Source: Bacillus subtilis subsp. subtilis str. 168 (lineage in GTDB: Bacteria > Bacillota > Bacilli > Bacillales > Bacillaceae). Taken from it: a DNA stretch of 64,000 nt. The notes below the pieces were generated by a model that was not told the origin of the DNA, searched no databases, and saw only the letters and a list, made by a program, of their open reading frames with translations. Made by a program: the position numbers and the translations under genes. Below, in pieces: positions 12,497-34,110 of this stretch (its first letter is position 1; each line of letters begins with the position of its first letter). Where the stretch lies: contig NC_000964.3 in assembly GCF_000009045.1 (NCBI RefSeq), forward strand, positions 186,001-250,000, in the 5' to 3' direction.

Positions 12497-13843
12497 ATGG
12501 GCAAGTATTTTGGAACAGACGGTGTAAGAGGTGTCGCCAATAGTGAGCTTACACCTGAGCTGGCCTTTAAAGTCGGACGTTTCGGCGGTTATGTGCTGAC
12601 AAAAGACAAACAACGTCCAAAAGTGCTGATAGGCCGCGATACACGCATCTCCGGCCATATGCTGGAGGGAGCCCTTGTCGCCGGACTTTTATCCATTGGC
12701 GCAGAAGTCATGCGCCTGGGTGTCATTTCTACACCAGGTGTATCTTATTTGACAAAAGCGATGGATGCAGAGGCGGGCGTCATGATTTCCGCTTCTCATA
12801 ACCCAGTGCAGGATAACGGCATCAAATTCTTTGGGGGAGATGGATTTAAGCTTTCTGATGAACAGGAGGCTGAAATTGAGCGCCTGATGGACGAACCTGA
12901 GGATAAGCTGCCAAGACCTGTCGGAGCAGACCTTGGACTTGTAAACGATTATTTTGAAGGCGGACAAAAATATCTGCAATTCTTAAAACAGACAGCTGAT
13001 GAAGATTTCACAGGCATTCATGTGGCATTGGACTGTGCCAATGGCGCAACGTCATCCTTGGCGACACACCTGTTTGCTGATTTAGATGCAGATGTTTCTA
13101 CAATGGGGACTTCCCCGAACGGATTAAACATTAATGACGGCGTCGGTTCGACTCATCCCGAAGCGCTCAGCGCGTTTGTCAAAGAGAAAAACGCGGATCT
13201 CGGTCTTGCGTTCGACGGTGACGGCGACCGCCTGATTGCTGTCGATGAAAAAGGAAATATTGTAGACGGCGACCAAATCATGTACATATGCTCAAAACAT
13301 CTGAAATCAGAGGGCCGTTTAAAGGATGATACAGTGGTTTCAACCGTGATGAGCAACCTCGGCTTCTATAAGGCGCTCGAAAAAGAAGGCATCAAAAGCG
13401 TGCAGACAGCTGTCGGCGACCGCTACGTAGTAGAAGCAATGAAAAAAGACGGCTACAACGTCGGCGGAGAGCAGTCAGGACATCTTATTTTCCTTGATTA
13501 CAACACGACAGGGGACGGATTATTGTCTGCTATTATGCTGATGAACACTTTAAAAGCAACAGGCAAGCCGCTGTCAGAGCTTGCAGCTGAAATGCAGAAG
13601 TTCCCGCAGCTGTTAGTCAATGTGAGAGTGACTGATAAATATAAAGTTGAAGAAAATGAAAAAGTAAAAGCAGTTATTTCTGAAGTTGAAAAAGAAATGA
13701 ACGGCGACGGCCGGATTTTGGTGCGCCCTTCAGGAACTGAACCGCTCGTCCGTGTCATGGCTGAAGCGAAGACGAAAGAGCTGTGCGATGAGTATGTCAA
13801 TCGCATTGTTGAAGTCGTCCGGTCAGAAATGGGATTAGAGTAA
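12497..13843 (+). CDS. glmM: Phosphoglucosamine mutase
   Basis: [22 protein letters not shown] and GGEQSGH motifs. Confidence 0.98.
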
Positions 13844-14276: not shown

Positions 14277-16079
14277 ATGTGTGGAATCGTAGGTTATATC
14301 GGTCAGCTTGATGCGAAGGAAATTTTATTAAAAGGGTTAGAGAAGCTTGAGTATCGCGGTTATGACTCTGCTGGTATTGCTGTTGCCAACGAACAGGGAA
14401 TCCATGTGTTCAAAGAAAAAGGACGCATTGCAGATCTTCGTGAAGTTGTGGATGCCAATGTAGAAGCGAAAGCCGGAATTGGGCATACTCGCTGGGCGAC
14501 ACACGGCGAACCAAGCTATCTGAACGCTCACCCGCATCAAAGCGCACTGGGCCGCTTTACACTTGTTCACAACGGCGTGATCGAGAACTATGTTCAGCTG
14601 AAGCAAGAGTATTTGCAAGATGTAGAGCTCAAAAGTGACACCGATACAGAAGTAGTCGTTCAAGTAATCGAGCAATTCGTCAATGGAGGACTTGAGACAG
14701 AAGAAGCGTTCCGCAAAACACTTACACTGTTAAAAGGCTCTTATGCAATTGCTTTATTCGATAACGACAACAGAGAAACGATTTTTGTAGCGAAAAACAA
14801 AAGCCCTCTATTAGTAGGTCTTGGAGATACATTCAACGTCGTAGCATCTGATGCGATGGCGATGCTTCAAGTAACCAACGAATACGTAGAGCTGATGGAT
14901 AAAGAAATGGTTATCGTCACTGATGACCAAGTTGTCATCAAAAACCTTGATGGTGACGTGATTACACGTGCGTCTTATATTGCTGAGCTTGATGCCAGTG
15001 ATATCGAAAAAGGCACGTACCCTCACTACATGTTGAAAGAAACGGATGAGCAGCCTGTTGTTATGCGCAAAATCATCCAAACGTATCAAGATGAAAACGG
15101 CAAGCTGTCTGTGCCTGGCGATATCGCTGCCGCTGTAGCGGAAGCGGACCGCATCTATATCATTGGCTGCGGAACAAGCTACCATGCAGGACTTGTCGGT
15201 AAACAATATATTGAAATGTGGGCAAACGTGCCGGTTGAAGTGCATGTAGCGAGTGAATTCTCCTACAACATGCCGCTTCTGTCTAAGAAACCGCTCTTCA
15301 TTTTCCTTTCTCAAAGCGGAGAAACAGCAGACAGCCGCGCGGTACTCGTTCAAGTCAAAGCGCTCGGACACAAAGCCCTGACAATCACAAACGTACCTGG
15401 ATCAACGCTTTCTCGTGAAGCTGACTATACATTGCTGCTTCATGCAGGCCCTGAGATCGCTGTTGCGTCAACGAAAGCATACACTGCACAAATCGCAGTT
15501 CTGGCGGTTCTTGCTTCTGTGGCTGCTGACAAAAATGGCATCAATATCGGATTTGACCTCGTCAAAGAACTCGGTATCGCTGCAAACGCAATGGAAGCTC
15601 TATGCGACCAGAAAGACGAAATGGAAATGATCGCTCGTGAATACCTGACTGTATCCAGAAATGCTTTCTTCATCGGACGCGGCCTTGACTACTTCGTATG
15701 TGTCGAAGGCGCACTGAAGCTGAAAGAGATTTCTTACATCCAGGCAGAAGGTTTTGCCGGCGGTGAGCTAAAGCACGGAACGATTGCCTTGATCGAACAA
15801 GGAACACCAGTATTCGCACTGGCAACTCAAGAGCATGTAAACCTAAGCATCCGCGGAAACGTCAAAGAAGTTGCTGCTCGCGGAGCAAACACATGCATCA
15901 TCTCACTGAAAGGCCTAGACGATGCGGATGACAGATTCGTATTGCCGGAAGTAAACCCAGCGCTTGCTCCGTTGGTATCTGTTGTTCCATTGCAGCTGAT
16001 CGCTTACTATGCTGCACTGCATCGCGGCTGTGATGTGGATAAACCTCGTAACCTTGCGAAGAGTGTTACTGTGGAGTAA
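14277..16079 (+). CDS. glmS: Glutamine-fructose-6-phosphate amidotransferase
   Basis: MCGIVG N-terminus, [10 protein letters not shown]-terminal [11 protein letters not shown]; SD AGGAGG. Confidence 0.99.
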
Positions 16080-16089
16080 TAAATGTTTA

Positions 16090-16125
16090 ACCCCTTTGGA
16101 TAAGATTATCTAAAGGGGTGTTTTT
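16090..16125 (+). terminator. glmS terminator
   Basis: ACCCCTTTGGATA/TATCTAAAGGGGT hairpin plus T-tract. Confidence 0.9.
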
Positions 16126-16475
16126 ATGTCCAAAAGCGAAAGAACGTCTACAGTGGAAAAATGGATTAAAGAAGTTGATGGTACAGGACCCGACTATCGA
16201 TCGACCATGGCTATAGATTTAAGATGTTTCCTCATTAGATCGGTCAATCAGGTTAAAAGGCATTAAAACTTGGAGAGAAACTGCTTTTGCCTAACTGAGT
16301 TTTCTAATGTTAATACAGATATAAGAGAGCAGTTCCTCATTAAGATACGCTTTTGATAGCAGTTGGAATTTAGCATGCTAGAAATCCGAAAACCGGAGAG
16401 CCTATTGGAATGATAACGTGTTTTTTTATTGACAATTAATAAAGGGCAAAGAATTCTAGAAGTCGCACTTACAAT
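16126..16475 (+). pseudogene. Tn7-family TnsA endonuclease relic (includes the 46-aa ORF 16126-16266)
   Basis: Across frameshifts and stops reads MSKSERTSTVEKWIKE..G.G.DY / PWL*I*DVSSLDRSIRLKGIKTWR / DIREQF / GI*HARNPKTGEPIGMIT / LLTINKGQ, collinear with TnsA motifs. Confidence 0.85.
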
Positions 16476-16546
16476 GTACTTGTGGGATTAGGTTTTAAAG
16501 TTCATTCTTTTTTTATTGAGTACATTCCGGTTAAAGTTGAAATGAT

Positions 16547-17458
16547 TCAGTAAAGGACACGCCATAAATAAAAGGTAGCGTATGATTGCCATTCTTTCCA
16601 TGGAACCGATATTTCTAAGATTTCATCTTTCGTAGGCTTTCGGTTCATATTACGTAATATTTTTATCGAATGAATAAGACCCACATCATCGATTGGAAAA
16701 GCTGTCGGGAACCTAAGGCAGCGCATTAGAACATAATTGGCTGTCCAAGGACCGATTCCTCGTATTTTAATTAAGTTTTTTTCAGCATCTTTAAAGTTCA
16801 TTTTCATTAATTTTTCCCTCGATAATTCTCCACTTGCCATTAATCTGGCTATTCCAATGATATATTCACTTTTTTTCACCGTCATTTTAATATCTGCCAG
16901 GTCGGTAGGGGTTAACCGTGCAATTCGCTCGTACGGTGGGAACACCCAATACTTTTTACCATTCCATTCAATAGAATCGCCAAATGCTTCTACAAATTGC
17001 TTCTTTAAGGAGTACGCGAAGGCTAAGTTAATTTGTTGCCCTAAAACTCCCCAACATAAAGCTTCAAATAAATCGGGAATGCCGATCACTCGCAACCCAT
17101 AAAATTTTCGGGCAGGCATTTTAAGTAATGGATCTGCTTTTGCCATTTCATAAAATGGAGTTAAATCGTTATCAAGATCAAACCATTCATGAATATATTT
17201 TACAATCTCTTCCCGTTTCCACTGCTCAACAGGTCTAGAATCGTTTAGGAATTGAACAATCATTTGTTTATTATTGATTACGCTTACCTGCACTAAGGAC
17301 CGAATTTCCCCAATGGCTATAACTTTTGTAATGATATTGTTCTCTATTTCATACATGCATTCATTTTTTTCCCTGGTTAGGTAGCCAAGGTTCGCATTCA
17401 TGTCGAAAATTTCAGGTAATGTAATGACAATAACATCATTGACTTCATGCCATGTCAC
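16547..17458 (-). CDS. alkA: DNA-3-methyladenine glycosylase II
   Basis: HhH-GPD motif IRGIGPWTANYVLMR...FPIDD. Confidence 0.96.
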   Translation of the reverse strand: MTWHEVNDVIVITLPEIFDMNANLGYLTREKNECMYEIENNIITKVIAIGEIRSLVQVSVINNKQMIVQFLNDSRPVEQWKREEIVKYIHEWFDLDNDLTPFYEMAKADPLLKMPARKFYGLRVIGIPDLFEALCWGVLGQQINLAFAYSLKKQFVEAFGDSIEWNGKKYWVFPPYERIARLTPTDLADIKMTVKKSEYIIGIARLMASGELSREKLMKMNFKDAEKNLIKIRGIGPWTANYVLMRCLRFPTAFPIDDVGLIHSIKILRNMNRKPTKDEILEISVPWKEWQSYATFYLWRVLY

Positions 17459-17728
17459 TTTTTCATTCTCCTTATCTTAAATAATTATAAGAAAACTCAC
17501 GCTGGTTGAAATTAGTTTATCACATAATCATCTTTACTCATTTTGTTATCTTGCTATTACATTCTAACCACCTTATTTTTTTCTATTTATGAGGTTATAG
17601 TGTAGTTATCAAGAATGCTAAACGGGAGTAGATAAAAATGGCCCAAGATATAAAAAACGCGTGTCGAAAATTTAAATTGGGATTCAATTCAAAGAATTAG
17701 ATGAGCATTGTAAGGAGAGGTGAGATAA

Positions 17729-18364
17729 ATGCCGGATAGTATCAATAACGGACATAAAGAGAGCCATGATCATAGAATTTCGAATGATGCAGAAATGATA
17801 ACAGATGAAAAGTGGCAAGCAATTATAAATAATGATGCAGCGTACAATAATCAATTTTTCTACGCTGTTAAATCGACAGGGATATTCTGTAAACCATCCT
17901 GTAAATCTCGCGTTCCGAAAAAAGAAAATGTATGTATCTTTCCAAACACAGAACAAGCTCTCCGCGCAAATTTTCGCCCTTGTAAACGTTGCAAGCCCAC
18001 TAATGAAAAAATGCCTGATAGCGAGTGGGTTGATTTAATTACTGAATACATTGATAAAAATTTCACAGAAAAATTAACGCTAGAATCGTTAGCAGATATT
18101 TGTCATGGGAGTCCGTATCATATGCATCGAACATTTAAAAAAATTAAAGGCATTACGCTGGTTGAGTATATACAACAAGTTAGAGTACACGCGGCTAAAA
18201 AGTATTTGATTCAGACAAATAAAGCGATTGGAGATATCGCTATATGTGTGGGTATAGCTAACGCGCCTTATTTTATTACTTTATTTAAAAAGAAAACTGG
18301 ACAGACACCAGCACGATTTCGTCAAATGAGTAAAATGGAGGAAACGTACAATGGAAACAAATAA
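17729..18364 (+). CDS. adaA: Methylphosphotriester-DNA alkyltransferase / AraC activator
   Basis: Ada Zn site FCKPSCKSR...RPCKRC plus AraC HTH. Confidence 0.97.
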   Translation: MPDSINNGHKESHDHRISNDAEMITDEKWQAIINNDAAYNNQFFYAVKSTGIFCKPSCKSRVPKKENVCIFPNTEQALRANFRPCKRCKPTNEKMPDSEWVDLITEYIDKNFTEKLTLESLADICHGSPYHMHRTFKKIKGITLVEYIQQVRVHAAKKYLIQTNKAIGDIAICVGIANAPYFITLFKKKTGQTPARFRQMSKMEETYNGNK

Positions 18365-18890
18365 ACCAACCCTTTATTGGTCTTTACTAATGTTCAAGGA
18401 TTGGAATTTTTATATTGCTTCAACTTTAAAGGGGCTTGTGTTTGTAGGTTCACAGAACAAACCAATCGAGGAATTGTTCGAATGGGCTAGGAAACGCTTT
18501 CCGGGAAGTCTTCTTGTTGAAGATGATGATAAGCTTGAACCCTATGCCGTTGAAATCACTCAATATCTAGAAGGAAAGCGGAAAAACTTTACTGTTCCAG
18601 TTGAGTACGCCGGTACGCAATTTCAGCTAGCCGTCTGGAATGCACTTTGTGAAATTCCTTATGGACAGACGAAATCCTATTCCGACATTGCAAATGATAT
18701 AAATAAACCAGCAGCTGTTCGTGCTGTAGGTGCGGCTATTGGGGCTAATCCGGTATTAATTACTGTACCGTGCCATCGTGTAATAGGAAAGAATGGCTCA
18801 TTAACTGGCTATCGGGGCGGATTTGAAATGAAGACACTGCTCCTCGATCTGGAAAAGCGAGCTTCATCTGAAATGGATGTTCCTCATTGA
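18351..18890 (+). CDS. adaB: O6-methylguanine-DNA methyltransferase
   Basis: PCHRV active site. Confidence 0.97.
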   Translation: METNKPTLYWSLLMFKDWNFYIASTLKGLVFVGSQNKPIEELFEWARKRFPGSLLVEDDDKLEPYAVEITQYLEGKRKNFTVPVEYAGTQFQLAVWNALCEIPYGQTKSYSDIANDINKPAAVRAVGAAIGANPVLITVPCHRVIGKNGSLTGYRGGFEMKTLLLDLEKRASSEMDVPH

Positions 18891-18955
18891 AAGTGAATCA
18901 TCTATAATGGGTTGGATTCTTTTAGAGGAAAGTAAAGACCAGTTTACTGATAAAC

Positions 18956-18984
18956 TTGACAACTTTTAAAATTTAGCATATCTT
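18956..18984 (+). promoter_or_regulatory. Candidate sigmaA promoter of the ndhF operon
   Basis: TTGACA-17-TATCTT about 420 nt upstream of the ndhF ATG. Confidence 0.6.
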
Positions 18985-19231
18985 ATACGTAACTTAATAA
19001 TCGATGCAGATGTTTATTTTTCCTTTTAAAATATGTAGGCCTTTAGCATTCTTTTCATATTTCATTTTAAATATTGATAGGATGAAAAAGTATCCTAATA
19101 AAAAAGGAAGAGAACATGAGTCGATTTATTTGATAATCAGGACTATATTAAAGGAAATGAAAACATAGCATAAAGTAAAGACCAATAATAAGGTAGCTCT
19201 TCAAAAAACTTCGCTGAAGTTAGTTGAAGTG

Positions 19232-19299
19232 AAGCCGACAATTTTCAGGATTCAATGATCTAACATAATCATTGAAATTTTGAAGTTGTCGGCTTTTTT
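19232..19299 (+). terminator. Long terminator-like hairpin inside the ndhF leader (candidate attenuator)
   Basis: AAGCCGACAA...TTCAATGAT/ATCATTGAA...TTGTCGGCTT followed by TTTT, 110 nt before the ATG. Confidence 0.75.
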
Positions 19300-19408
19300 G
19301 TTGGAAAAAAATAGAGATAAATAAAAATTGAAATAAATAATAGACAAATATGATCTGATTGAAAGGTCTTTTGACCAATAATGAGTTTTAAAAAAGGGAG
19401 AATTTAGA

Positions 19409-20926
19409 ATGTTAGTTTCGCTGAGTTTGTCATCATTATTAACATTATTTTTTATTATGCTTATGGCTTCTGGGATTAGTGGACTATTGTTTTTACATCC
19501 GCGTGTACCCTTGAGTTTTGTTCGCATTCATATTGGGATCTTGGCTTTACCACTTTTGGTTTCCTTACTGATTCTTGCCAATAGTGGTGTGAGTGGAAAT
19601 GTTGGCCCTTGGCACTTAGATTCCTTAGCTTGTTTAATGACTTTCTTTGTTCTTGCAATTGGATTCATCATTCAGCGTTTTTCTGTACGTTACTTAATGG
19701 GGGATCGATCTTATCGAAAATATTTTACGCTTTTTACTTTCACAACAGGAGCTGCTTCAATGACATGGTTAAGTGGTGATCTCCGCTTGATGGTTCTATT
19801 TTGGGGAGCAACTCTTGTTGGTTTAACCTTACTTATAAGGTTAAACAGTGCTTGGCAAGTGGCTAGTGAAGCAGCCAAAATTTCTGGACGGTTATTTTTG
19901 TTAAGTTGGTTTTCTTTGTTTTTTGCGATGATGTGGCTTTTTCATGCCACAGGTCAATGGCAGCTATCATTGGTTGTAACAAATGAAAGTTTAGCTGGGC
20001 TGGGAGAATGGGAGAGAACAGGGATTCAGCTATTGATTGTACTGGCGGTGATCATTCCTGCAGCTCAATGGCCGTTCCAAAGATGGTTGGTTGAGTCTAT
20101 TGTTGCTCCCACCCCAGTTTCTGCAATTATGCATGCAGGTTTAGTAAATGCTGGAGGAATAATACTAACTCGATTTTCACCTCTATTTCATGGTGGTATC
20201 GCTTCGATTATCTTACTTCTGCTTGCTAGCATTTCTGTATTGATTGGAACTGGAATTAGTTTAGTTCAGGTTGATTATAAACGCCAGTTAGTAGGCTCCA
20301 CGATTGGACAAATGGGGTTTATGCTCATTCAGTGTGCATTAGGCGCCTATATAGCAGCCATTATTCACCTTATTTTACATGGTTTATTCAAGGCTACGTT
20401 GTTTCTACAGGCTGGTTCAGCAGTAGGGCGTCATGAAGTATCGACTCGCACTAATGAAAGAACATCCTATTTATGGGTCATGGCTGGTCGGATTTTATCC
20501 TTAGTTATAGGTGTTGCTTTTTGGCTCACTGCTCCTGGAGACGGGTATCACTTAATCAGTGCGCTGATCTTAGGGTGGTCATTGTCCGTTTCTTGGGATC
20601 AGCTTGTCGCTTTTGGAGAGGGCCGAATTGGCCGGATTGCCGGTTTAACTGTTTTAGGAGGAGCAGCCCTCGTATATTTTATCATTCATCACCTTTTCTA
20701 TAAGTGGCTGCATACAACCATTTTTCAAAGTGTTCAACCTCCAATGTCAGCTGTCATGATTGTCGTATGTCTCTTACTCTTTGGCAGTGCTTTAGGTACG
20801 TGGGTTGCTCGTCATCGTTCTTCCGTTTTTTTCGCGGTACTCTATCTTTGGTTAGTCCGATTAGGTGAAGCAAAACCAAAGTCAGTAGAGAGTCACCCAG
20901 ACTACCTTAAACAATATATTTCATAA
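19409..20926 (+). CDS. ndhF: NuoL/MrpA-like membrane subunit of an inorganic-carbon transporter (DabB/MpsA type)
   Basis: Polytopic; AQWPFQRWL, PTPVSAIMHAG, DYKRQL and HGLFKA motifs; adjacent to a DUF2309 gene. Confidence 0.92.
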   Translation: MLVSLSLSSLLTLFFIMLMASGISGLLFLHPRVPLSFVRIHIGILALPLLVSLLILANSGVSGNVGPWHLDSLACLMTFFVLAIGFIIQRFSVRYLMGDRSYRKYFTLFTFTTGAASMTWLSGDLRLMVLFWGATLVGLTLLIRLNSAWQVASEAAKISGRLFLLSWFSLFFAMMWLFHATGQWQLSLVVTNESLAGLGEWERTGIQLLIVLAVIIPAAQWPFQRWLVESIVAPTPVSAIMHAGLVNAGGIILTRFSPLFHGGIASIILLLLASISVLIGTGISLVQVDYKRQLVGSTIGQMGFMLIQCALGAYIAAIIHLILHGLFKATLFLQAGSAVGRHEVSTRTNERTSYLWVMAGRILSLVIGVAFWLTAPGDGYHLISALILGWSLSVSWDQLVAFGEGRIGRIAGLTVLGGAALVYFIIHHLFYKWLHTTIFQSVQPPMSAVMIVVCLLLFGSALGTWVARHRSSVFFAVLYLWLVRLGEAKPKSVESHPDYLKQYIS

Positions 20927-20940
20927 GGAGCTAATCTGAG

Positions 20941-23556
20941 ATGGGCATTACATCCGTATTAACGAAAGATAATGTAAAAAAGATAGATACAGATATTGAT
21001 GTTCAAGAAAGGGATCTTAACGTTTTCATTACATCTGCCAGCCGAGTGATTGCGCCACTTTGGCCTATTTCTACATTTGCTGCACGTAATCCGTGGATGG
21101 GACTTGAAAACCAACCTTTTGATCAGGTTGCAAGTTGGTTGAAAAACACTCGCGATGTTGATATATACCCTAGTGCGTCTATGATCCGTTCAGCAAAGAA
21201 TAAAGGTGAGATTGATGAAGATTTTGTGGAAATGGGGCTGCAGCGTTGGCTTGATTCACATTCCTATCACATCCCACGGGACGTAGCAGAGCGATTTTGT
21301 CATGCTGCATTAAAGTTAGATCCCCTGCCTTCCGACCTTTTATCATCACATGAGCTGGAGAAATTAGTAAGTGAATGTAGTGGATTGGATCATATCGAGA
21401 ATGTGTTTATGCAGCCACTAAGTTCGTATATAGAGAATCAAGATGGTGAAAGGCTAGTCAATATACTAGATCATCATGTCATTAAATGGAGTAAATTATA
21501 TCTTGATGACTCTCAAGCGGGTTGGACAATGCCTAATCGTGAGGAAGGTTTCTATCGTGCTTGGCAGCATCTTATTCAATATGATCCAGCACTTAGCAAA
21601 AAGCAGCGAGAAAGGGTAAAAGGTTGGCCGAAAGAGGCACATTTGGCTTTACAAGAAGCTTTATTCGCACTAGAAATCCCAGAGTCAGAAATCCAGACTT
21701 ATCTTGAAGGTCATTTACTTTCATTACCTGGATGGGCAGGGATGATGCTTTGGCGCTCCCAACAATCGAGCCACGAACATGCACTACTAACAGAATATTT
21801 AGCGGTTCGAATATCCATGGAGTGGGCTCTTATAAAGCCATACTTACCTTTGACTAATGAACGATCTAAGAAAACAATTTCAATTGCTCCCCTTATAGCA
21901 GCTTGGATTCATTGGGGTGGGCTTACATTAGAAGAATGGTCACAGATGACGGCCAGTGAACAAAACGAATATTTATCATTTGCCTACAGCTTTGATGAGA
22001 AACTTCGCAAGAAACTTTGGTTAGAAGCTTGGGAACAAACGTACACTGATCGATTAAGCCAGAAGATCATCTCGAAACAACGTGAAACCGGCCGTGAAAA
22101 ATCTGCATTAGCTCAATTAGCATTCTGCATCGATGTACGATCAGAACCTTTTCGTCGTCAACTAGAAAAAGAAGGCCCGTTTGAAACGATTGGTATTGCT
22201 GGTTTCTTCGGGGTGCCGATTGCAACTTGTGAACTTGGCAGTAAACACAGTCATGCTTCCTTGCCGATCATACAAAAACCGCAAAATAAAATAAAAGAGT
22301 TCGCAGATGAGGATGTATTCAAAAAATACAATCAACGGAAGCAAGCAATTCATTCTTTAAGCCATACCTTTAAAACGATGAAGCAGAATGCGCTTTCGAG
22401 CTTACTACTGCCTGAGCTAAGTGGACCTTGGCTTACTCTGCAAATGGCAGCCCGTAGCTTTGTGCCAAGAAAGGCGGGTCGTTTCATTCGTAATCTCCGT
22501 GAGGCTTGGTTACGCAAACCTGATACAAAACTCTCGCTTCATCATGATGCTACAGAGGCAGAAATACCTGTGGGTTTTACTGATGAAGAAAAAGTGAACT
22601 ATGCTCGCCAAGCATTAAAAATGATGGGGTTAACAGAGAACATCGCACCATTGGTCGTGATTTGTGGGCATGGCAGTCAAAGTACTAATAATCCTTATTC
22701 TGCAGCCCTTGATTGTGGTGCCTGTGGTGGAGCGGCCGGTGGATTCAATGCAAGAGTTTTAGCTGCTTTATGTAATCTATCAGAGGTACGAGAAGCTCTT
22801 TTAGCTGAAGGAATTAAAATTCCTGAGGATACAGTTTTTGCAGCAGCTGAACATAATACAACAGTAGATGAATTACATTGGCTTTATGTACCAGAGCTTT
22901 CCGAAGCTGCACAAGAAGCATTTGAACAAATTGAAGCCGTTATGCCGAAAGTGAGACATCATGTAAACGCAGAACGTCTAGCCCAATTACCGAATTTCCA
23001 ATCGAAGCTAAAAAATCCGAAGGCTGAGGCAAACCGATTTGCGGAAGATTGGAGTGAGATACGTCCGGAATGGGGACTGGCTCGTAATGCCGCTTTTATT
23101 ATCGGTAAACGTGAATTAACTCAGGATTGTGATTTGGAAGGCAGAGCCTTTCTCCATAATTATGATTGGAAGCAGGATGAAAGCGGTGAACTCCTAGCAA
23201 ATATTATTGTAGGACCTGGAACTGTAGCCCAATGGATTAATTTACAATATTACGCATCAACGGTAGCACCTCATTATTATGGCAGCGGAAATAAAGCAAC
23301 TCAAACCGTTACTGCAGGTCTCGGCGTTATGCAGGGGAATGCAAGCGATTTGTTAGCCGGACTGCCTTGGCAATCCGTCATGGAATCAGATCACGAGGCC
23401 TATCATTCTCCTCTTCGTTTATTGATACTCATCCAAGCACCTAGAGAATATGTAGAACGGTTATTAAATCATGATTCAGCATTTCTGCAAAAAGTTCAAA
23501 ATGGATGGGTCCGACTGGCTAGTCTTGATCCAGAAGGATGTTGGGAAAGCTGGTAA
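20941..23556 (+). CDS. ybcC: DUF2309 soluble subunit (DabA/MpsB type), beta-carbonic-anhydrase-like Zn site
   Basis: FCIDVRSE, GHGS, LDCGACGG and EHNTT motifs. Confidence 0.92.
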   Translation: MGITSVLTKDNVKKIDTDIDVQERDLNVFITSASRVIAPLWPISTFAARNPWMGLENQPFDQVASWLKNTRDVDIYPSASMIRSAKNKGEIDEDFVEMGLQRWLDSHSYHIPRDVAERFCHAALKLDPLPSDLLSSHELEKLVSECSGLDHIENVFMQPLSSYIENQDGERLVNILDHHVIKWSKLYLDDSQAGWTMPNREEGFYRAWQHLIQYDPALSKKQRERVKGWPKEAHLALQEALFALEIPESEIQTYLEGHLLSLPGWAGMMLWRSQQSSHEHALLTEYLAVRISMEWALIKPYLPLTNERSKKTISIAPLIAAWIHWGGLTLEEWSQMTASEQNEYLSFAYSFDEKLRKKLWLEAWEQTYTDRLSQKIISKQRETGREKSALAQLAFCIDVRSEPFRRQLEKEGPFETIGIAGFFGVPIATCELGSKHSHASLPIIQKPQNKIKEFADEDVFKKYNQRKQAIHSLSHTFKTMKQNALSSLLLPELSGPWLTLQMAARSFVPRKAGRFIRNLREAWLRKPDTKLSLHHDATEAEIPVGFTDEEKVNYARQALKMMGLTENIAPLVVICGHGSQSTNNPYSAALDCGACGGAAGGFNARVLAALCNLSEVREALLAEGIKIPEDTVFAAAEHNTTVDELHWLYVPELSEAAQEAFEQIEAVMPKVRHHVNAERLAQLPNFQSKLKNPKAEANRFAEDWSEIRPEWGLARNAAFIIGKRELTQDCDLEGRAFLHNYDWKQDESGELLANIIVGPGTVAQWINLQYYASTVAPHYYGSGNKATQTVTAGLGVMQGNASDLLAGLPWQSVMESDHEAYHSPLRLLILIQAPREYVERLLNHDSAFLQKVQNGWVRLASLDPEGCWESW

Positions 23557-23632
23557 TGATGAATCTAAGCATTTATCAAATGGATTTGTTACTCAATACA
23601 AAAATGATAAACATAAGGAAGAGGTGTGCTGT

Positions 23633-24160
23633 ATGAATGTAAACCAAAATAAAAAAGTATTATTTTTGACGGATATTGAAAACGGTTTGGAGCCTATTTT
23701 ACAAGAAGCGACTAACACTTCTGCAGAGAATATGTTGACTATACAAAGCTATGGTGCCAGTATTTCACATCCTTATGGAGAAATCATGAGGTCTGTTATT
23801 TTTGCGATTTACCAGGAAGATGTTGAGGAGATTTTTGTAGTAGGAACAAAAGATAAGAAGACTTCTGCAGGTAATGGACTAACTCAACTTGAAACAATGA
23901 AAGATAAAATACAAACATTGGATTATCTGTTTCAAAATTGCAAGCCTGAATTTTTAGGTGGTACGGTCGATGAATGGCTAAATGAAAATAGCAGTGACAC
24001 CATTGAAAAAAGTGTTGATATGATTCGACATCATCCCCTAGTGCCGTCATATGTTAAAGTTAGAGGTTTATTCGTTAATCATAAGGGTGGAAAACCCTCA
24101 ATCGCGGAGGTTCCTGATGTTAAAACAGGTCAAGCCATGCCTGATCATTGCTTGTCATGA
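23633..24160 (+). CDS. ybcF: Beta-carbonic anhydrase-like protein lacking zinc ligands
   Basis: Start MNVNQ behind GAGGTG; HPYGEIMRSVIFAIY and IRHHPLVP resemble clade-D beta-CA. Confidence 0.8.
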   Translation: MNVNQNKKVLFLTDIENGLEPILQEATNTSAENMLTIQSYGASISHPYGEIMRSVIFAIYQEDVEEIFVVGTKDKKTSAGNGLTQLETMKDKIQTLDYLFQNCKPEFLGGTVDEWLNENSSDTIEKSVDMIRHHPLVPSYVKVRGLFVNHKGGKPSIAEVPDVKTGQAMPDHCLS

Positions 24161-24223
24161 TGAAATGCAGGTTTAACTTCTAAACGCACCCATATATGGA
24201 GAAAGCAGTTCTAAGGAGATTGT

Positions 24224-24514
24224 ATGAGCGCTAATTTAACTGATTTTGTCACGAAAACAATAGAGGAAATGAACTCGTTTGATCGTGAAAATATGGAATG
24301 TATAAAAAAACTAATTAGAAAAGCAATTGATTTTTATCATCTAAAGTCTTATGAAGAAGTTGAGGAAACCCATTCAGGAAATGTTCGATTTTTGCATGTC
24401 CACTCTATGATGGAAGAAAATATGTTATCCAAAATGATAGTGGTCACAAGAAACGGTAAAACTGATTTGGATATTGAAGGTGTATATGAAGGATATGTTG
24501 TAAGAGAATATTAA
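24224..24514 (+). CDS. ybcH: Hypothetical protein
   Basis: 96 aa ORF with SD AAGGAG, inside the operon. Confidence 0.8.
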   Translation: MSANLTDFVTKTIEEMNSFDRENMECIKKLIRKAIDFYHLKSYEEVEETHSGNVRFLHVHSMMEENMLSKMIVVTRNGKTDLDIEGVYEGYVVREY

Positions 24515-24571
24515 TGAGACGAAATCACAAATAGAATATGCCAATTTTTTTGCTCAGGAGATGTATTAGAT

Positions 24572-24946
24572 ATGAAAAAGTCTAAGGGTTCTATTGAATC
24601 AGAGATCAGTAAGTCCATTACTCAATGGGAGAAGGATTATCTTGGGCGGGGGTCTGTATCTGTTAAGACTGATATACTGCGGGACATGATCATCGTCAAT
24701 TTAAAAGGGATTTTAACACCAGCCGAATATGTAGTTTGTGGATCAAAAGAGGGTATGTTATCTATCAAACAAACTCGTTCAGAGTTAGTCGAATCAGGTA
24801 TAGAAGGCCTTAAGGATATTATCTTAAAAATAACCGGAGAAAAAGTGAAAAGTTTTCATACTGATTTAAGCTCCCGGACAGGTGAACGAGTGATGGTATT
24901 TAAATTATGTAATGATCTAGAGAAAAATTTGGAAAAGATCTTATAA
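24572..24946 (+). CDS. ybcI: DUF2294 (MpsC-like) protein
   Basis: EKDYLGRGSVSVKTDIL and FHTDLSSRTGERVMVF family motifs. Confidence 0.88.
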   Translation: MKKSKGSIESEISKSITQWEKDYLGRGSVSVKTDILRDMIIVNLKGILTPAEYVVCGSKEGMLSIKQTRSELVESGIEGLKDIILKITGEKVKSFHTDLSSRTGERVMVFKLCNDLEKNLEKIL

Positions 24947-25112
24947 TCTAAAGAAAATAAATGTTTTGACGGTGTGGAATTTGTTGTGAATTGAACATAA
25001 AGAACTGCCGATTCTTTTGTTTTACAATTATGGTATCATTGATAACTTTTATTCATATCCTAAGCGGACATAAAGAGATGTCAATTCATAGTACACTGTC
25101 ATGTTATTCCTG

Positions 25113-25158
25113 TCGAAAGATCTAACATCCGCTGTTGTTATGAGCGGATGTTTTTTTA
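25113..25158 (+). repeat. Terminator-containing direct repeat, copy 1
   Basis: TCGAAAGATCTAACATCCGCT...AGCGGATGTTTTTTT; similar copy at 27034. Confidence 0.8.
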
Positions 25159-25393
25159 CATCTATTTTAAATACATGAATTTGATGCTGGTGATTAGTCA
25201 CTTGAACAATATTTGAAAACATCCTTGTCACCTGCCGGGTTTCCCCAAGTGTTTAGTGACATGATTATGAGACCAACTTCGTAAAGCTTGCTGATAAATT
25301 TAAGCGGTGAACAAAATTGATATGCTGTCTTCAGTTTCATTTCACGGAATTAGTCAGAGATAAACCTTTAATTAAATATATCCAAAAAACGGA

Positions 25394-25421
25394 TTGACAT
25401 ATCGAAATATAACGATATAAT
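25394..25421 (+). promoter_or_regulatory. sigmaA promoter of ybzH overlapping an ATATCG-N8-CGATAT operator
   Basis: TTGACA-16-TATAAT; ATG begins 8 nt after the -10 and has no SD. Confidence 0.75.
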
Positions 25422-25428
25422 AATCGAT

Positions 25429-25731
25429 ATGGAACCAATTGAAGTATTCAAAGCCTTATCAAATGAATCAAGGCTGCAAATTTTACAATGGCTGAAGGAG
25501 CCCGATCGTCATTTTGCACCCCATGAAGGGATTGATATGAACACAATCGGGGTATGTGTCAGTCAAATAACAGACAAATTGAAAATGACGCAATCGACAG
25601 CTTCTCAATATCTTACCATCCTTTTAAGAGCCGGCCTAATTAAGGCGGAGCGAATCGGAAAGTACACGTATTATAAAAGAGATGAAGAAGCCATTGGGAA
25701 ACTTGCTGACTTTCTTAAAACAGAGATATAA
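25429..25731 (+). CDS. ybzH: ArsR/SmtB-family repressor
   Basis: FKALSNESRLQIL...TQSTASQYLTIL..AGLI. Confidence 0.9.
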   Translation: MEPIEVFKALSNESRLQILQWLKEPDRHFAPHEGIDMNTIGVCVSQITDKLKMTQSTASQYLTILLRAGLIKAERIGKYTYYKRDEEAIGKLADFLKTEI

Positions 25732-25767
25732 AAATAAACATCAAAAGATGTTTATTTTTACACCATA

Positions 25768-25829
25768 CATATCGACATATTACGATGTGTTTATTTTTTT
25801 ATAATAACATATCGATAATTCGTGATATG
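25768..25829. promoter_or_regulatory. Two further CATATCG-N8-YGATRTG operators upstream of ybcL
   Basis: 25768-25789 and 25808-25829; same palindrome as at the ybzH promoter. Confidence 0.7.
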
Positions 25830-25858
25830 TTTATTAATAATTAAGGAGTGAATGTTTT

Positions 25859-27031
25859 ATGTCTAACACTTGGAAAATTTATATTTTAGCCATTGTCAGC
25901 TTTTTAGTTGGAACCTCAGAGTACATCATTTCCGGAATTTTGGATCAAATTGCTCATACTCTCGGGATCACTTTAGCTGCCGCGGGCCAGCTTATTACCA
26001 TTTTCTCACTTGTATATGCTCTTTCTACACCCGTACTTATGGCGTTGACAGCAAGTATGGATAGACGCAAATTGATGATGTATGCCCTAGGTTTGTTTGT
26101 GTTCGGTAATGTCCTGGCTTTTGTACTGCCTGGTTATGGATGGTTTATTGCAGCGCGGATCATTATGGCGATGGGAGCAGGTGTGGTTGTTGTCACCGCA
26201 TTAACGATTGCCGCTAAGATTGCATCGGAAGGGAAGCAGGGCAGTGCCATCGCTACGGTCGTGATGGGATTTACCGCTTCTTTAATCATTGGTGTTCCGC
26301 TTGGAAGAATGATAGCAGTAGCATTAGGCTGGAAGTCTGTATTTGGAGCCATTGCTTTGTTGGGATTGATCGCAATGGTCGTTATTTTCTTTACTCTTCC
26401 GTATACTGAAGGGGATAAGCCTGTGCCTTTGCTTCAACAGCTTGCTCTTTTCAAAAAACGGAAAGTGGCTATGGGATTATCAATCACTTTCTTCTGGCTC
26501 GGGGGATATTCTGTTGCTTACACTTATTTGTCACCGTATCTCTTGAACATCTCAGGTATAAATGGCAAGCTGCTCAGCGGTGTTTTGCTTATATTTGGAA
26601 TTGCCAGTTTGGTTGGATCGAAGTTTGGGGGATATAGCACCGATAAATGGGGAGTGCCCTTTACACTCGTTGGCGGGATGACGTTGCATATCGTCACACT
26701 GATTCTGCTGTCACTTGTTACTCATTCCTATATCGGAGTGTTGGTGATTCTCATATTATGGTCGTTTGCCGCATGGTCCACCGGTCCGACACAGCAATTT
26801 CACCTGGCTACAATAGAACCGGAAATGTCAGGTGTTTTGCTTAGCATGAATCAGTCAATGATGCAATTCGCCATGGCGGTCGGCGCAGGTATAGGAGGGG
26901 TTTTTGTGGAAAACGTATCATTGGCCTCGATTACCTGGGTTGGTGCGTTAGGGGTTATGATTGCAATTATTGCATCATTGCTGATTTTCAATTCGCAACC
27001 GAAACAAGCGCTAAAAGATATCAATCAATAA
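25859..27031 (+). CDS. ybcL: MFS efflux transporter
   Basis: About 12 TM helices; MFS motif A-like ASMDRRKL. Confidence 0.92.
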   Translation: MSNTWKIYILAIVSFLVGTSEYIISGILDQIAHTLGITLAAAGQLITIFSLVYALSTPVLMALTASMDRRKLMMYALGLFVFGNVLAFVLPGYGWFIAARIIMAMGAGVVVVTALTIAAKIASEGKQGSAIATVVMGFTASLIIGVPLGRMIAVALGWKSVFGAIALLGLIAMVVIFFTLPYTEGDKPVPLLQQLALFKKRKVAMGLSITFFWLGGYSVAYTYLSPYLLNISGINGKLLSGVLLIFGIASLVGSKFGGYSTDKWGVPFTLVGGMTLHIVTLILLSLVTHSYIGVLVILILWSFAAWSTGPTQQFHLATIEPEMSGVLLSMNQSMMQFAMAVGAGIGGVFVENVSLASITWVGALGVMIAIIASLLIFNSQPKQALKDINQ

Positions 27032-27033
27032 TT

Positions 27034-27080
27034 TCGAAAGTTCTAACATCCGCTCGTTATACAAGCGGGTGTTTTTTTTA
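27034..27080 (+). repeat. Terminator-containing direct repeat, copy 2
   Basis: TCGAAAGTTCTAACATCCGCT...AGCGGGTGTTTTTTT. Confidence 0.8.
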
Positions 27081-27126
27081 GCGTAGTCAGTCCATGCATG
27101 AGTCTTCCAAGGGCCGACATCGTTCT

Positions 27127-27510
27127 GTATGTGTCGAAGGTGCACTGAAGCTGAATGAGATTTCTTAAGGCTTTGCCGCGGCGAGCTGAAGTACAGTACG
27201 ATTGCCTTGATCGAACACTGGAAACACAAGAGAACGTAAACCTGAACATCCGCGTAAACGTCAAGGAAGTTGCCACTTGGGGAGTAAACACTTGCATCAT
27301 CTCGCTGAAAGGCCTAGACAATGCGGATGACAGATTCGTATTGCCGGAAGTAAACACAGCGCTTGCTCTGTTTCCGTTGTCGATTGCAGCTGATTGCTTA
27401 CTAATGCTGCCCTGCATCTCGGTTGTGATGTCGATAAGCAGCGTAATGAAGAGTGTTACTGTGGAGTAAGATGTTTAACCCCTCTGGATATTTTAGCCGA
27501 AGGGGTTTTT
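27127..27510 (+). pseudogene. ybcM: Degenerate duplicate of the glmS 3' end and terminator (contains the ybcM ORF 27155-27469)
   Basis: Collinear with 15696-16120, e.g. GTATGTGTCGAAGG, GATGACAGATTCGTATTGCCGGAAGTAAAC, GAAGAGTGTTACTGTGGAGTAA; small deletions and frameshifts. Confidence 0.93.
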
Positions 27511-27856
27511 AGTATAGATATTTGATTTAAATTACAGGAGACTTCATTCATTTAACCAAAGTCATTGCTTTCTTAATCACTAAAGTTTATTTGAAAATAA
27601 TCTCTTGATTTAATTTCCTCGAAGAGATTTTTTGTCAATCTATTAGGCATCAGAATTTTTATAACATAATGGACCGTCTTTTTGACGTTTTGTTTATAGA
27701 ACAAGAAAATATTCAAAACATAAGTGGAAAATTAGGGGTGAGCTCCTGTTTTTCTCGAGAGGATAGCTTGTCAGCTTTTCTATTTTTAAAGGGTTAAAAT
27801 ATTCTATTTATACTAATTAATGTAATTTTTAGGATAATATACAAAATCCCCCTTAC

Positions 27857-27881
27857 TTCGACAATTGCAATCTGGTATTAT
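27857..27881 (+). promoter_or_regulatory. skf promoter with Spo0A box
   Basis: TTCGACA (reverse 0A box TGTCGAA) at 27857-27863; extended -10 TGnTATTAT. Confidence 0.75.
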
Positions 27882-27940
27882 CGTATCGCATGGGAGCTAT
27901 GTCAATAGACTCTATGCAAAAATTGAGAGGAGGTTTACTT

Positions 27941-28108
27941 ATGAAAAGAAACCAAAAAGAATGGGAATCTGTGAGTAAAAAAGGACTTATGAAGCCGGGA
28001 GGTACTTCGATTGTGAAAGCTGCTGGCTGCATGGGCTGTTGGGCCTCGAAGAGTATTGCTATGACACGTGTTTGTGCACTTCCGCATCCTGCTATGAGAG
28101 CTATTTAA
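27941..28108 (+). CDS. skfA: Sporulation killing factor precursor (sactipeptide)
   Basis: 55 aa from MKRNQK behind GAGGAGG; core CMGCWASKSIAMTRVCALPHPAMRAI. Confidence 0.97.
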   Translation: MKRNQKEWESVSKKGLMKPGGTSIVKAAGCMGCWASKSIAMTRVCALPHPAMRAI

Positions 28109-28174
28109 CATTTGAGAATAGGGAGTTGAGCGTATTTGCTTATACTCCTTATTTTCTCTTAAGGGGGATTTTAT

Positions 28175-29407
28175 ATGTCATATGATCGTGTTAAAGATTT
28201 TGATTTGCCAGAGTTAGCGGTTCATTTACAGCCTCATGGTGCTGTAATGATTGATAGAAAAAGTATGTTTTATTTCAGACTCAGTGGACGTGGAGCACAG
28301 TTGGCGTTTCTGTTATCAAAAAACAAAAATCTTCATAAAACGGCACGTATTTGGGAGATTATGAAAAAAGAAGAGATGAGTGCTGACCAATTAAAAGAAG
28401 AGCTTAGTGCCCATCCATTTACGGAGGCTTGGACGGAAGGGCTGTTAGATCAGCCTTTACACGTTTCGGGTTCGCTAGATTCATATTTACCTATTAGTTG
28501 TACCTTACAGTTGACAAATGCTTGTAATTTAAGCTGTTCGTTTTGCTATGCCAGCTCAGGTAAACCATATCCTGAGGAATTATCTAGTGAACAATGGATA
28601 TTGGTTATGCAAAAGCTAGCAGCCCATGGAGTTGCTGATATTACGCTGACCGGGGGTGAAGCAAAGCTGATCAAAGGGTTTAAAGAATTAGTCGTTGTTG
28701 CAAGTTCGTTGTTTACCAATGTGAATGTATTTAGTAATGGATTGAACTGGCGAGATGAAGAAGTTGAATTACTTAGTCACTTAGGCAATGTTTCTGTACA
28801 GATTAGTATTGATGGTATGGATAATACACATGACCAATTAAGAGGCAGAAAAGGCGGCTTTAAAGAAAGTATGAATACCATTAAAAAATTATCAGAAGCA
28901 AACATTCCAGTGATTGTCGCTATGACCATTAATGAGTCCAATGCTGATGAAGTATCAGATGTGGTGGAGCAATGTGCCAATGCGGGTGCTTTTATCTTTC
29001 GTGCAGGAAAAACGTTATCTGTTGGACGTGCGACAGAAGGCTTTAAGGCTTTGGATATTGATTTTGAAGAAATGGTTCAAATACAGCTTAGGGAAGCACG
29101 TCATAAATGGGGAGATCGCCTGAACATAATTGATTGGGAGCACGAAGAGAGTTCGTTCACAACAGATTTTTGTACACCAGGATATCTTGCTTGGTATATA
29201 AGAGCAGATGGATACGTAACTCCTTGCCAATTAGAAGATTTGCCGCTAGGGCATATTTTAGAAGATAGCATGGCTGACATTGGTTCACCTGCTCGTTTGC
29301 TTCAGTTAAAATGTGAAGCAAAAAATTGCAAATGTATAGGGAAAATTGAGCTATCTGAACCGGACTTACCTTTTCAAAAAGAAGTCAAGGCAGGGATTCA
29401 GGAATGA
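28175..29407 (+). CDS. skfB: Radical SAM sactionine synthase
   Basis: CNLSCSFC (CxxxCxxC) motif, C-terminal Cys cluster. Confidence 0.96.
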   Translation: MSYDRVKDFDLPELAVHLQPHGAVMIDRKSMFYFRLSGRGAQLAFLLSKNKNLHKTARIWEIMKKEEMSADQLKEELSAHPFTEAWTEGLLDQPLHVSGSLDSYLPISCTLQLTNACNLSCSFCYASSGKPYPEELSSEQWILVMQKLAAHGVADITLTGGEAKLIKGFKELVVVASSLFTNVNVFSNGLNWRDEEVELLSHLGNVSVQISIDGMDNTHDQLRGRKGGFKESMNTIKKLSEANIPVIVAMTINESNADEVSDVVEQCANAGAFIFRAGKTLSVGRATEGFKALDIDFEEMVQIQLREARHKWGDRLNIIDWEHEESSFTTDFCTPGYLAWYIRADGYVTPCQLEDLPLGHILEDSMADIGSPARLLQLKCEAKNCKCIGKIELSEPDLPFQKEVKAGIQE

Positions 29408-30894
29408 ATAGTCTATCATTGGTGTTCTGGAGTATTTTAGCAGTTGTTGGATTACTGTTATTTATTAAATTCAAACCCCCAACAATTGCTTCACTACTCT
29501 TAAGCAAAGATGAGGCAAAAGAAATAAGCATTCAATTTATAAAAGAGTTTGTTGGGATAGATGTAGAGAACTGGGATTTTTATTCAGTATATTGGTATGA
29601 CCACGATACAGTAAATAAACTTCATCACTTAGGCATACTTAAGAAAAATAGAAAGGTTTTATATGATGTTGGGTTGGTCGAATCATGGAGAGTCCGTTTC
29701 GTTCACCAGAATCAATCATTTGTAGTTGGTGTCAATGCCAATCGAGAAATCACTTTTTTTTATGCGGATGTTCCGAAAAAAACCCTTTCGGGGAAGTTTG
29801 AACAAGTTTCTCCAGAGACACTCAAGCAGAGGTTAATGGCTTCACCTGATGGACTTTGGTCTAGAGCAAATATGACTGGTACTGGTAAAAAAGAGGAGGA
29901 TTTTCGCGAGGTCAGTACTTATTGGTACATAGCGGAAGCGGGAGATATTCGGCTCAAAGTGACTGTTGAATTACAGGGCGGCCGAATTTCTTATATTGGT
30001 ACTGAACAAGAAATACTAACAGATCAAATGAGTAAAGTCATTCGAGATGAACAAGTGGAATCGACATTCGGAGTATCTGGTATGCTGGGTTCAGCTTTAG
30101 CGATGATCCTTGCGATTCTCATCCTTGTATTTATGGATGTGCAAACAAGCATAATCTTCAGTCTTGTTCTGGGTTTGTTGATTATAATATGCCAGTCATT
30201 GACGCTGAAAGAAGATATTCAATTAACAATTGTAAATGCTTATGATGCAAGAATGAGTGTCAAAACGGTCAGTTTATTAGGTATTTTGTCTACACTTCTT
30301 ACAGGATTATTAACAGGATTTGTAGTATTTATATGTTCATTGGCAGGAAATGCGCTTGCTGGTGATTTTGGATGGAAAACGTTTGAACAACCAATAGTTC
30401 AGATTTTCTATGGAATAGGAGCAGGGCTCATTAGTTTAGGAGTGACTTCTCTGCTGTTTAACTTATTGGAGAAAAAGCAATATTTACGAATTTCACCTGA
30501 GCTTTCTAACCGAACTGTCTTTCTATCAGGTTTTACCTTTAGGCAAGGATTGAATATGAGCATACAAAGTTCAATTGGAGAAGAGGTCATCTATCGGCTA
30601 TTAATGATTCCAGTCATTTGGTGGATGAGTGGAAATATCCTCATCTCCATTATTGTATCTTCCTTTTTATGGGCGGTGATGCACCAAGTAACTGGATATG
30701 ACCCAAGGTGGATACGTTGGCTGCATCTATTTATATTCGGTTGCTTTCTGGGAGTTCTCTTCATCAAATTTGGTTTTATTTGTGTATTAGTAGCTCATTT
30801 CATTCATAATTTAGTACTCGTCTGTATGCCGCTGTGGCAGTTCAAGCTTCAGAAACATATGCATCATGATCAGCCAAAGCATACTTCACTCTAA
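29404..30894 (+). CDS. skfC: CPBP/Abi-family membrane protease
   Basis: EEVIYR, WAVMH and AHFIHN CPBP motifs. Confidence 0.92.
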   Translation: MNSLSLVFWSILAVVGLLLFIKFKPPTIASLLLSKDEAKEISIQFIKEFVGIDVENWDFYSVYWYDHDTVNKLHHLGILKKNRKVLYDVGLVESWRVRFVHQNQSFVVGVNANREITFFYADVPKKTLSGKFEQVSPETLKQRLMASPDGLWSRANMTGTGKKEEDFREVSTYWYIAEAGDIRLKVTVELQGGRISYIGTEQEILTDQMSKVIRDEQVESTFGVSGMLGSALAMILAILILVFMDVQTSIIFSLVLGLLIIICQSLTLKEDIQLTIVNAYDARMSVKTVSLLGILSTLLTGLLTGFVVFICSLAGNALAGDFGWKTFEQPIVQIFYGIGAGLISLGVTSLLFNLLEKKQYLRISPELSNRTVFLSGFTFRQGLNMSIQSSIGEEVIYRLLMIPVIWWMSGNILISIIVSSFLWAVMHQVTGYDPRWIRWLHLFIFGCFLGVLFIKFGFICVLVAHFIHNLVLVCMPLWQFKLQKHMHHDQPKHTSL

Positions 30895-30912
30895 TGATTA
30901 GGAGAAGATTTG

Positions 30913-33040: not shown

Positions 33041-33086
33041 TGGTTATGTAGAGTTATTGTTTTAAAACGAGGAGAGGGGCTCTTTT

Positions 33087-33602: not shown

Positions 33603-33606
33603 AAGG

Positions 33607-34032: not shown

Positions 34033-34084
34033 AATTTTCCGTCTTGTATGTGCGACAAACGGTTGAATATTATGATGAAACGGT

Positions 34085-34110
34085 CCTTCCTATAAGCAGG
34101 AAGGTTTTTT
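34085..34110 (+). terminator. skf operon terminator
   Basis: CCTTCCT/AGGAAGG hairpin plus T6. Confidence 0.8.

Follow-up and report, generated by a model that had tools for sequence, protein, structure and literature searches.

Tn7 makes TnsD-directed insertions about 25 bp past the stop codon of glmS, inside the terminator of that gene, with its right end and tnsA on the glmS side and with a 5-bp duplication of the target. The 3' end of glmS is the region recognised by target selectors of the TnsD type (attTn7). When the E. coli element (tnsABCDE) is compared with its relatives in the Bacillaceae, the ~25-bp spacing, the placement of the right end and tnsA towards glmS and the 5-bp duplication are also seen in the latter, and their TnsA proteins align with 1F1Z and 1T0F (E 2e-38) with the catalytic positions conserved. 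The Bacillaceae elements differ from Tn7 in having a terminator-like hairpin directly before tnsA. The general concept that genomic islands at attTn7 arise from successive Tn7-like insertions and their decay is said to have been set out by Parks and Peters in 2007. Among the described cases in Bacillus are the Tn7-like elements on B. cytotoxicus plasmids (PMC8725734) and the island BCEGI-1, which follows glmS in B. cereus ATCC 10987 and is Tn7-like (PMC2359905).

What is known, then, is that Tn7-like elements and their remnants form islands after glmS; what is new is a fossil of such an element, unannotated, in B. subtilis. It lies in the 64,000-nucleotide stretch of B. subtilis subsp. subtilis str. 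168 analysed here (the window), where glmS is followed by a stretch of low GC content (34-40%, as against ~45%) that carries alkA, adaA, adaB, ndhF, ybcC and the skf genes and that is the region historically named prophage 1. As in islands of the BCEGI-1 type, the region after glmS is variable, of low GC content and furnished with tns genes or their remains, with layered debris in relatives; B. subtilis differs in that its tns content is one half-gene and in that the region has been labelled a prophage. Compared with E. coli Tn7, only about half of tnsA is left and no other part of the machinery. The reading that we hold with good confidence is that a Tn7-like element was inserted at glmS, with its right end and tnsA on the glmS side, that it is now dead, and that the rest of the region was added separately. 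The sequence-only reading from which this study started knew of no account of the fossil, and we likewise found no description of it in the literature searched (ybbU, ybcM, Tn7 in B. subtilis, prophage 1).

A tnsA pseudogene after glmS

In the window glmM (12497-13843) precedes glmS (14277-16079, plus strand), a 600-aa ORF that is 77-100% identical to GlmS in the 80 Bacillaceae loci assembled for comparison, each consisting of glmS with 10 kb on either side (labelled L and a number). One of these, L042 (JAGGQZ010000021.1), is titled Chryseobacterium sp. ISL-80 and encodes a GlmS 79% identical to the Bacillus protein; on this sequence the assembly is probably mislabelled or contaminated. The tnsA pseudogene (16126-16505, plus strand) begins 47 bp past the glmS stop codon, on the same strand, and covers codons 1 to ~152 of 279, the 3' half being absent. 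The peptide pieces that the sequence-only reading had quoted in support of TnsA were all found in the frames it gave them when the three forward frames of 16080-16560 were read. As a blastn query against 72,556 plasmid records, the same interval (481 bp) matched 101 records, and at the top of these the matches are to genes of Tn7-like elements that are annotated as TnsA; a B. cytotoxicus plasmid gave the best match (E 3e-85, 75.3% identity, query 6-396), and tnsA of Staphylococcus sp. pLEW6932 is also among the best. With intact TnsA proteins as tblastn queries, 16126-16500 of the window was matched at E 1e-15 to 5e-17, a significant match of the kind on which the initial proposal had been made to depend. 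Judged on these comparisons, the DNA-level match between fossil and tnsA is far beyond chance. The homology spans 16085 to ~16505, starting earlier (with the hairpin that precedes tnsA) and ending slightly later than the 16126-16475 originally noted.

The closest intact sequences are those of B. cytotoxicus plasmids (NZ_CP024118, pCh2_83) and of plasmid pLEW6932 of Staphylococcus sp. 693-2 (NC_009130), with 75-81% nucleotide identity over the hairpin and tnsA codons 1-133 and with identical spacing from hairpin to ATG. These elements, borne on plasmids, are complete: they have tnsABC(D)E, repeats at the right end, a sequence that may be the left end, and cargo of 12-14 kb. The copy in the window is chromosomal, without ends and dead. 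In an alignment kept in the reading frame of B. cytotoxicus tnsA, identity is 81% over ungapped columns, and the fossil shows four in-frame stops and six indels, of which one is an insertion of 1 bp and the others are deletions of 2, 28, 10, 6 and ~31 bp. Several stops had been described as one substitution away from a sense codon, and the alignment places them at the named codons (AAG>TAG twice, CAA>TAA), with one further stop. The catalytic residues of E. coli TnsA, which we take from the structural literature to be E63, D114 and K132, correspond in the 1F1Z alignment to E60, D114 and K133 of intact Bacillus TnsA; in the fossil the E60 codon is intact, D114 is destroyed by the insertion and K133 lies inside the last deletion. 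The C-terminal domain of TnsA is absent from the fossil, while the intact plasmid-encoded protein (279 aa) has both Pfam domains, Tn7_TnsA-like_N and Tn7_Tnp_TnsA_C. A Pfam search with the five separate peptide pieces of the fossil (21-46 aa) gave no match, the TnsA_N model covering residues 71-166; because the pieces are too short, this is not counted against homology. Homology, lesions and position together bear out the proposal of a glmS-proximal tnsA pseudogene in the canonical orientation of Tn7.

The same fossil is present in B. stercoris (L006) and B. mojavensis (L014), where it shares the junction to the 3' flank of alkA, although internal deletions and stops differ among the three. 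The small ORF at the start of the fossil has an orthologue in B. stercoris that ends after 12 codons, and in B. mojavensis its frame and length are different. Since decay differs between species, it is neutral, and the ORF is not conserved. The species with the fossil are thus B. subtilis, B. stercoris and a less close relative, B. mojavensis, and those without it include B. spizizenii, B. inaquosorum and B. halotolerans, a patchy distribution that requires either several losses or exchange of alleles. Exchange is the essence of the alternative that survives best, in which another Bacillus would have been the source of fossil and alkA-adaAB alike, the fossil being dead by then and the transfer proceeding by homologous recombination (natural transformation) through the flanking glmS and ndhF. 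The departure of the distribution from the species tree, the high conservation of both flanks and the single 3' junction to alkA in three species with lineage-specific decay all speak for such an import; no donor has been identified, and the import would alter only the place of the insertion and not the identity of the sequence. We regard it as a real possibility, if not the one that we favour. Wherever the insertion took place, the fossil shows that this part of prophage 1 started out as a landing site for a transposon and not as a virus.

Make-up of the region named prophage 1

Searches for the remainder of the element covered the whole window. By tblastn with proteins of three element lineages (E <= 1), no relics of TnsB, TnsC, TnsD or TnsE were found (best E 0.19). 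When ten right and left ends were used in blastn-short to find TGT...ACA ends with arrays of TnsB repeats, only the hairpin at 16085-16125 was matched, and pattern searches for termini, in which an IUPAC pattern was allowed at most 3 mismatches and a fuzzy regex at most 5, returned matches at chance level only. The displaced 3' half of the native terminator, the mark of a left junction, was sought throughout the window with only the two known hairpins as a result, and no 5-bp target-site duplication was found in it. Because right-end repeats, left end and target duplication are lacking, the original insertion cannot be reconstructed in the window. Of the attributes of a Tn7-like element, the tnsA gene is there as a pseudogene only, and the right-end and tnsA side faces glmS in the same orientation as the intact genes of L029 and L034.

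Comparison of the island segment by segment across 12 genomes of the subtilis clade shows that the fossil co-varies only with alkA-adaA-adaB, with which it makes up the segment V1 (16126-18955). Besides the window, only L006 and L014 have this segment, and L005, L007-L013 and L026 lack it; in other species its slot is filled by different DNA, between 85 bp and 5.4 kb in length, with a mini-element and a tnsD relic among it. The three genes, alkA (16547-17458, minus strand), adaA (17729-18364, plus strand) and adaB (18351-18890, plus strand), are assigned to alkylation repair by Pfam and probably represent surviving cargo or a later replacement of it. In blastn searches of plasmids for alkA-adaAB travelling with Tn7-like genes, we saw only scattered ada homologues and no association with tns genes. 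In B. halotolerans (L005, 12197-16336) the slot after glmS contains a C-terminal fragment of TnsD (Pfam TnsD, E 6e-37), followed by a 759-aa ATPase of the AAA_13 family and a 289-aa ORF assigned to no family; by its contents this slot looks like leftover Tn7 cargo, and the two genes are possibly a defence pair.

Next to V1 lies a core with its own promoter (18956-25110, plus strand), which runs from ndhF (DabB) and ybcC (DabA) to MpsC and by Pfam includes a DUF6407 member. It is found in all loci of the subtilis clade, among them nine genomes without the fossil. As the core is conserved independently of the fossil, it is not demonstrably cargo of the fossil's element. A second short tnsA relic (…RPWLKIQDV…G[RK]), absent from the window, is detectable in L007, L008, L010 and L014 (E 0.001-0.1), 35-90 bp 5' of the conserved ndhF promoter (in L014 at ~14600-14640); its position hints at an older Tn7-like layer ahead of the ndhF-ybcC block, behind which the core may likewise have come in.

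Beyond the core, the segment V2 (~25158-36700) comprises an ArsR/MFS module, a copy of the glmS 3' end, the skf genes and a two-component system. It is missing as a block in L009 and L012, which keep ndhF-ybcC, and is partly present elsewhere, with the ArsR/MFS, glmS' and skf segments behaving as separate indels. From this independent pattern of indels it follows that only V1 is reasonably assignable to the element of the fossil. Some further observations concern the pieces of V2. The ArsR/MFS (ybcL-type) module is flanked by a terminator-like direct repeat of 45 bp with 82% identity (25113-25157 and 27034-27078), the first copy of which coincides with the indel boundary in L009 and L012. Together with glmS', the module recurs in licheniformis-group genomes at 84-86% identity, which exceeds that of glmS itself between the clades. 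The beginning of the skf region in B. atrophaeus (L013, 20915-21800) is 95.9% identical to 27776-28656 of the window, as compared with 88-92% in flanking genes, and this suggests recent horizontal exchange of skf.

The copy of the glmS 3' end (ybcM-type; 27127-27513, plus strand) is decayed and comprises the last ~385 bp of the gene with stop codon and terminator hairpin. Set against the true glmS (15696-16125), it shows no difference over its final 22 bp and a deletion of 5 bp immediately before these. It lies 11.4 kb away from the true gene on the downstream side and directly precedes skf, which it parts from the ArsR/MFS module, and by these similarities it is a duplicated attTn7-like site. 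Similar copies exist in L010, L011, L013, L014, L026 and, in the licheniformis group, L073; each is nearer to the glmS of its own clade than to other glmS' copies, which suggests that they originated repeatedly or underwent gene conversion. Campbell-type integration of a circle with a glmS 3' fragment, or tandem duplication, would produce such a copy. The glmS 3' duplication is the only long direct repeat of the region, in which there are no att repeats.

These data bear on the suggestion of the sequence-only reading that the island is the cargo of a dead Tn7-like element and not a prophage. Its negative half stands, as no phage genes are present; its positive half, cargo of a single element, does not, given that the segments are independent and ends are missing. 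To attribute the whole ~18-kb island, from tnsA' to skf, to one dead element has some appeal: the fossil sits at the glmS-proximal edge of the low-GC region, phage genes are absent, and Tn7-like elements can carry large cargo, as exemplified by the island after glmS in B. cereus ATCC 10987 (PMC2359905). Yet in 64 kb there is neither a left end nor a TnsB site, target duplication or other tns relic; the ndhF-ybcC block occurs in nine genomes of the clade that have no fossil, L009 and L012 have that block and lack 25158-36700, and a second glmS 3' copy splits the island. We therefore think it improbable that one element brought in the whole. On these comparisons, prophage 1 is best read as a layered mosaic island at an attTn7 hot spot, neither the cargo of one element nor a prophage.

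The leader hairpin and the glmS site in relatives

Homology to Tn7-like elements starts 41 bp 5' of the tnsA ATG, with a leader region (16085-16125, plus strand) in which the final few bases of the innermost TnsB-site region are followed by a hairpin (16090-16119) and then by a T-tract. The stem, which was also matched in a terminator scan, starts 11 nt after the glmS stop codon and has 13 pairs followed by GTTTTT; its predicted folding energy is -19.6 kcal/mol (z -4.2). The hairpin is 88-93% identical to that upstream of tnsA in the plasmid-borne L001, L002 and L083. In these plasmid elements it has the last TnsB-binding repeat on one side and the start codon of tnsA on the other, is far from any glmS, and is preceded by a right end of ~95 bp that consists of the terminus TGTrGrTTTrAAATAAAGT and 3-4 repeats of ~21 bp. 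The window lacks this right end, and the stem comes just 11 nt after the glmS stop. The window equals the fossil-free alleles (L005, L013; TAATAAATGTTTAACCCCTTTGG) as far as CCCCTTTGG, and past CCCCTTTGG it equals the hairpin of the element plus the ATG (ATAnGATTnTCTAAAGGGGTGTTTTTATG). A GC-rich stem-loop, a U-tract and a place at the end of a transcription unit, the properties of an intrinsic terminator, are all found in the hairpin, and from these the retained hairpin 16090-16119 now appears to be the terminator of glmS. A hairpin 9-11 nt past the glmS stop is kept in 13 out of 13 subtilis-clade sequences, while the decay of tnsA differs in each, a pattern consistent with selection for termination.

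Every right end examined (L001, L002, L007, L008, L023, L025, L029, L037, L062, L068 and L083) likewise has a stable stem-loop with a T-run, placed after the last TnsB-like repeat and before the start of tnsA. These hairpins belong to four unrelated sequence types, and in those of the CCCCTTTGG type the Shine-Dalgarno sequence of tnsA is inside the 3' stem.

The leader also has to be considered in judging the 46-aa ORF (ybbU-type; 16126-16266, plus strand), which consists of TnsA codons 1 to ~22 followed by an out-of-frame tail and, as had been supposed, is merely the start of the pseudogene. Every source annotates it as a hypothetical protein, so that its origin from tnsA has gone unrecognised in public annotation. 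Could it instead be a genuine small-protein gene that just resembles the N-terminus of TnsA? It does have an ATG with a good Shine-Dalgarno sequence (AAAGGGGTG), and it is identical or nearly so on hundreds of B. subtilis contigs. But that sequence is buried in the stem of the hairpin, the homology to tnsA runs on for 240 bp in other frames, the counterparts in B. stercoris and B. mojavensis are truncated or altered as described above, and identity within a species reflects low divergence and not selection. A genuine gene is thus very improbable; the ORF is an accident, and the fossil is without function in transposition.

Among relatives, tnsA-type genes 3' of glmS, the absence of which would have told against the initial proposal, are found in three Bacillaceae loci. 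Metabacillus sp. 84 (L029) has full-length tnsABC directly 3' of glmS, and Bacillus sp. BHET2 (L062) has tnsABCD 3.7 kb past it. In Bacillus sp. FJAT-47783 (L034) glmS is followed by tnsA and the start of tnsB, inside which the contig ends; its tnsA is probably frameshifted, because it is split into two overlapping tblastn segments. Relics of tnsA, tnsB, tnsD or tnsE were detected in L005, L006, L014, L053 and L083, the right-end terminus TGTnGnTTTnAAATAAAG lies at +23 to +28 past the glmS stop, the spacing classical for Tn7, in 15 of the 80 loci (14 genomes), and at least one Tn7-like trace is present in 32 of the 80.

Three close relatives carry a non-autonomous Tn7-like mini-element of 1.13 kb after glmS: B. 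inaquosorum (L008, 11826-12957), B. tequilensis (L010, 11826-12956) and B. rugosus (L007, 11828-12952). It contains a full right end with repeats, a hairpin of its own, a 223-aa ORF of the PAP2 family and the left terminus CTTTATTTCAAAGCTACA, and it interrupts the loop of the terminator hairpin of glmS, 25 bp past the stop codon. The flanking 5-bp duplication is perfect in L008 and L010 (GTTTT) and reads GTTTT/GCTTT in L007; removal of the element from L008 and L010 restores the hairpin of B. spizizenii. This proves that Tn7-type transposition into the glmS site occurred in close relatives of B. subtilis.

A possible history of the locus

The favoured history would begin with an element of the lineage now intact on the B. 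cytotoxicus and Staphylococcus plasmids. It would have entered the resident terminator hairpin at its loop, about 25 bp past the glmS stop, which is precisely the site taken by the mini-element that is still intact in B. inaquosorum and B. tequilensis. With an insertion at +25, GTTTAACCCCTTTGG would come to lie about 110 bp 5' of the element's own GTTTCACCCCTTTGG, and recombination between these direct repeats, identical at 14 of 15 positions, would yield exactly the sequence of the window. The same recombination would remove the right end of ~110 bp with all TnsB sites and thereby immobilise the element, and the hybrid hairpin left behind would now terminate glmS transcription. In the subsequent decay tnsBCDE and the left end would have been lost and tnsA cut after about codon 152, with the leader hairpin and the 5' half kept, and other DNA of prophage 1 would have been added at the hot spot by separate events. 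The step of recombination between half-hairpins is inferred from these repeats. Its predicted intermediate would begin with the glmS stop and ATGTTTAACCCCTTTGGTT, continue through the first copy of a 5-bp duplication into the right end (TGTnGnTTTnAAATAAAG...), the hairpin and an intact tnsABCDE, and carry its cargo up to the left end, beyond which the second copy of the 5 bp would precede AGCCAAAGGGGTTTTT; no such intermediate was found in the subtilis clade.

A broader and more speculative idea, to which we attach rather little weight, is that recycled transposon DNA has been the source of the glmS terminator in the B. subtilis group through a self-renewing cycle of insertion and locking. Each new element would land at +25, within the loop of its predecessor's hairpin; the half-hairpin so orphaned would recombine with the new hairpin, and the right end would be deleted in the process; and this deletion would fix the cargo and regenerate the terminator as a fresh target. 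To the element, the hairpin might serve to shield tnsA from read-through out of glmS and to bury its ribosome-binding site. The 'native' terminator of the fossil-free alleles may itself be an older product of the same process; in alleles of the B. halotolerans type, GTCCA is kept after the hairpin. If true, such a cycle would explain both why the island is layered and why the 3' end of glmS is duplicated.

That the region is a decayed prophage in which the piece of tnsA is incidental is hardly credible, as the low GC content and the name that the region has historically borne are all that speaks for it, published surveys also doubt it, and Pfam searches of 20 ORFs in 16.5-37 kb showed no integrase, terminase, capsid, tail or lysis genes and no other phage family, the families found being those of DNA repair, DabAB/Mps, ArsR/MFS, radical-SAM/ABC (skf) and two-component systems.

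A dead Tn7-like insertion followed by separate additions leaves the understanding of Tn7 biology itself unchanged, islands and remnants at attTn7 being familiar. It does mean that prophage 1, which has been deleted in genome-reduced strains, is at least in part debris of Tn7-like transposition and not a virus, and that a 'hypothetical protein' on hundreds of B. subtilis assemblies is the start of a pseudogene. The use of attTn7 in nature within the B. subtilis clade is of relevance to Tn7-type tools for site-specific integration in Bacillus. Finally, the retained hairpin suggests that the terminator of an essential gene is derived from a transposon.
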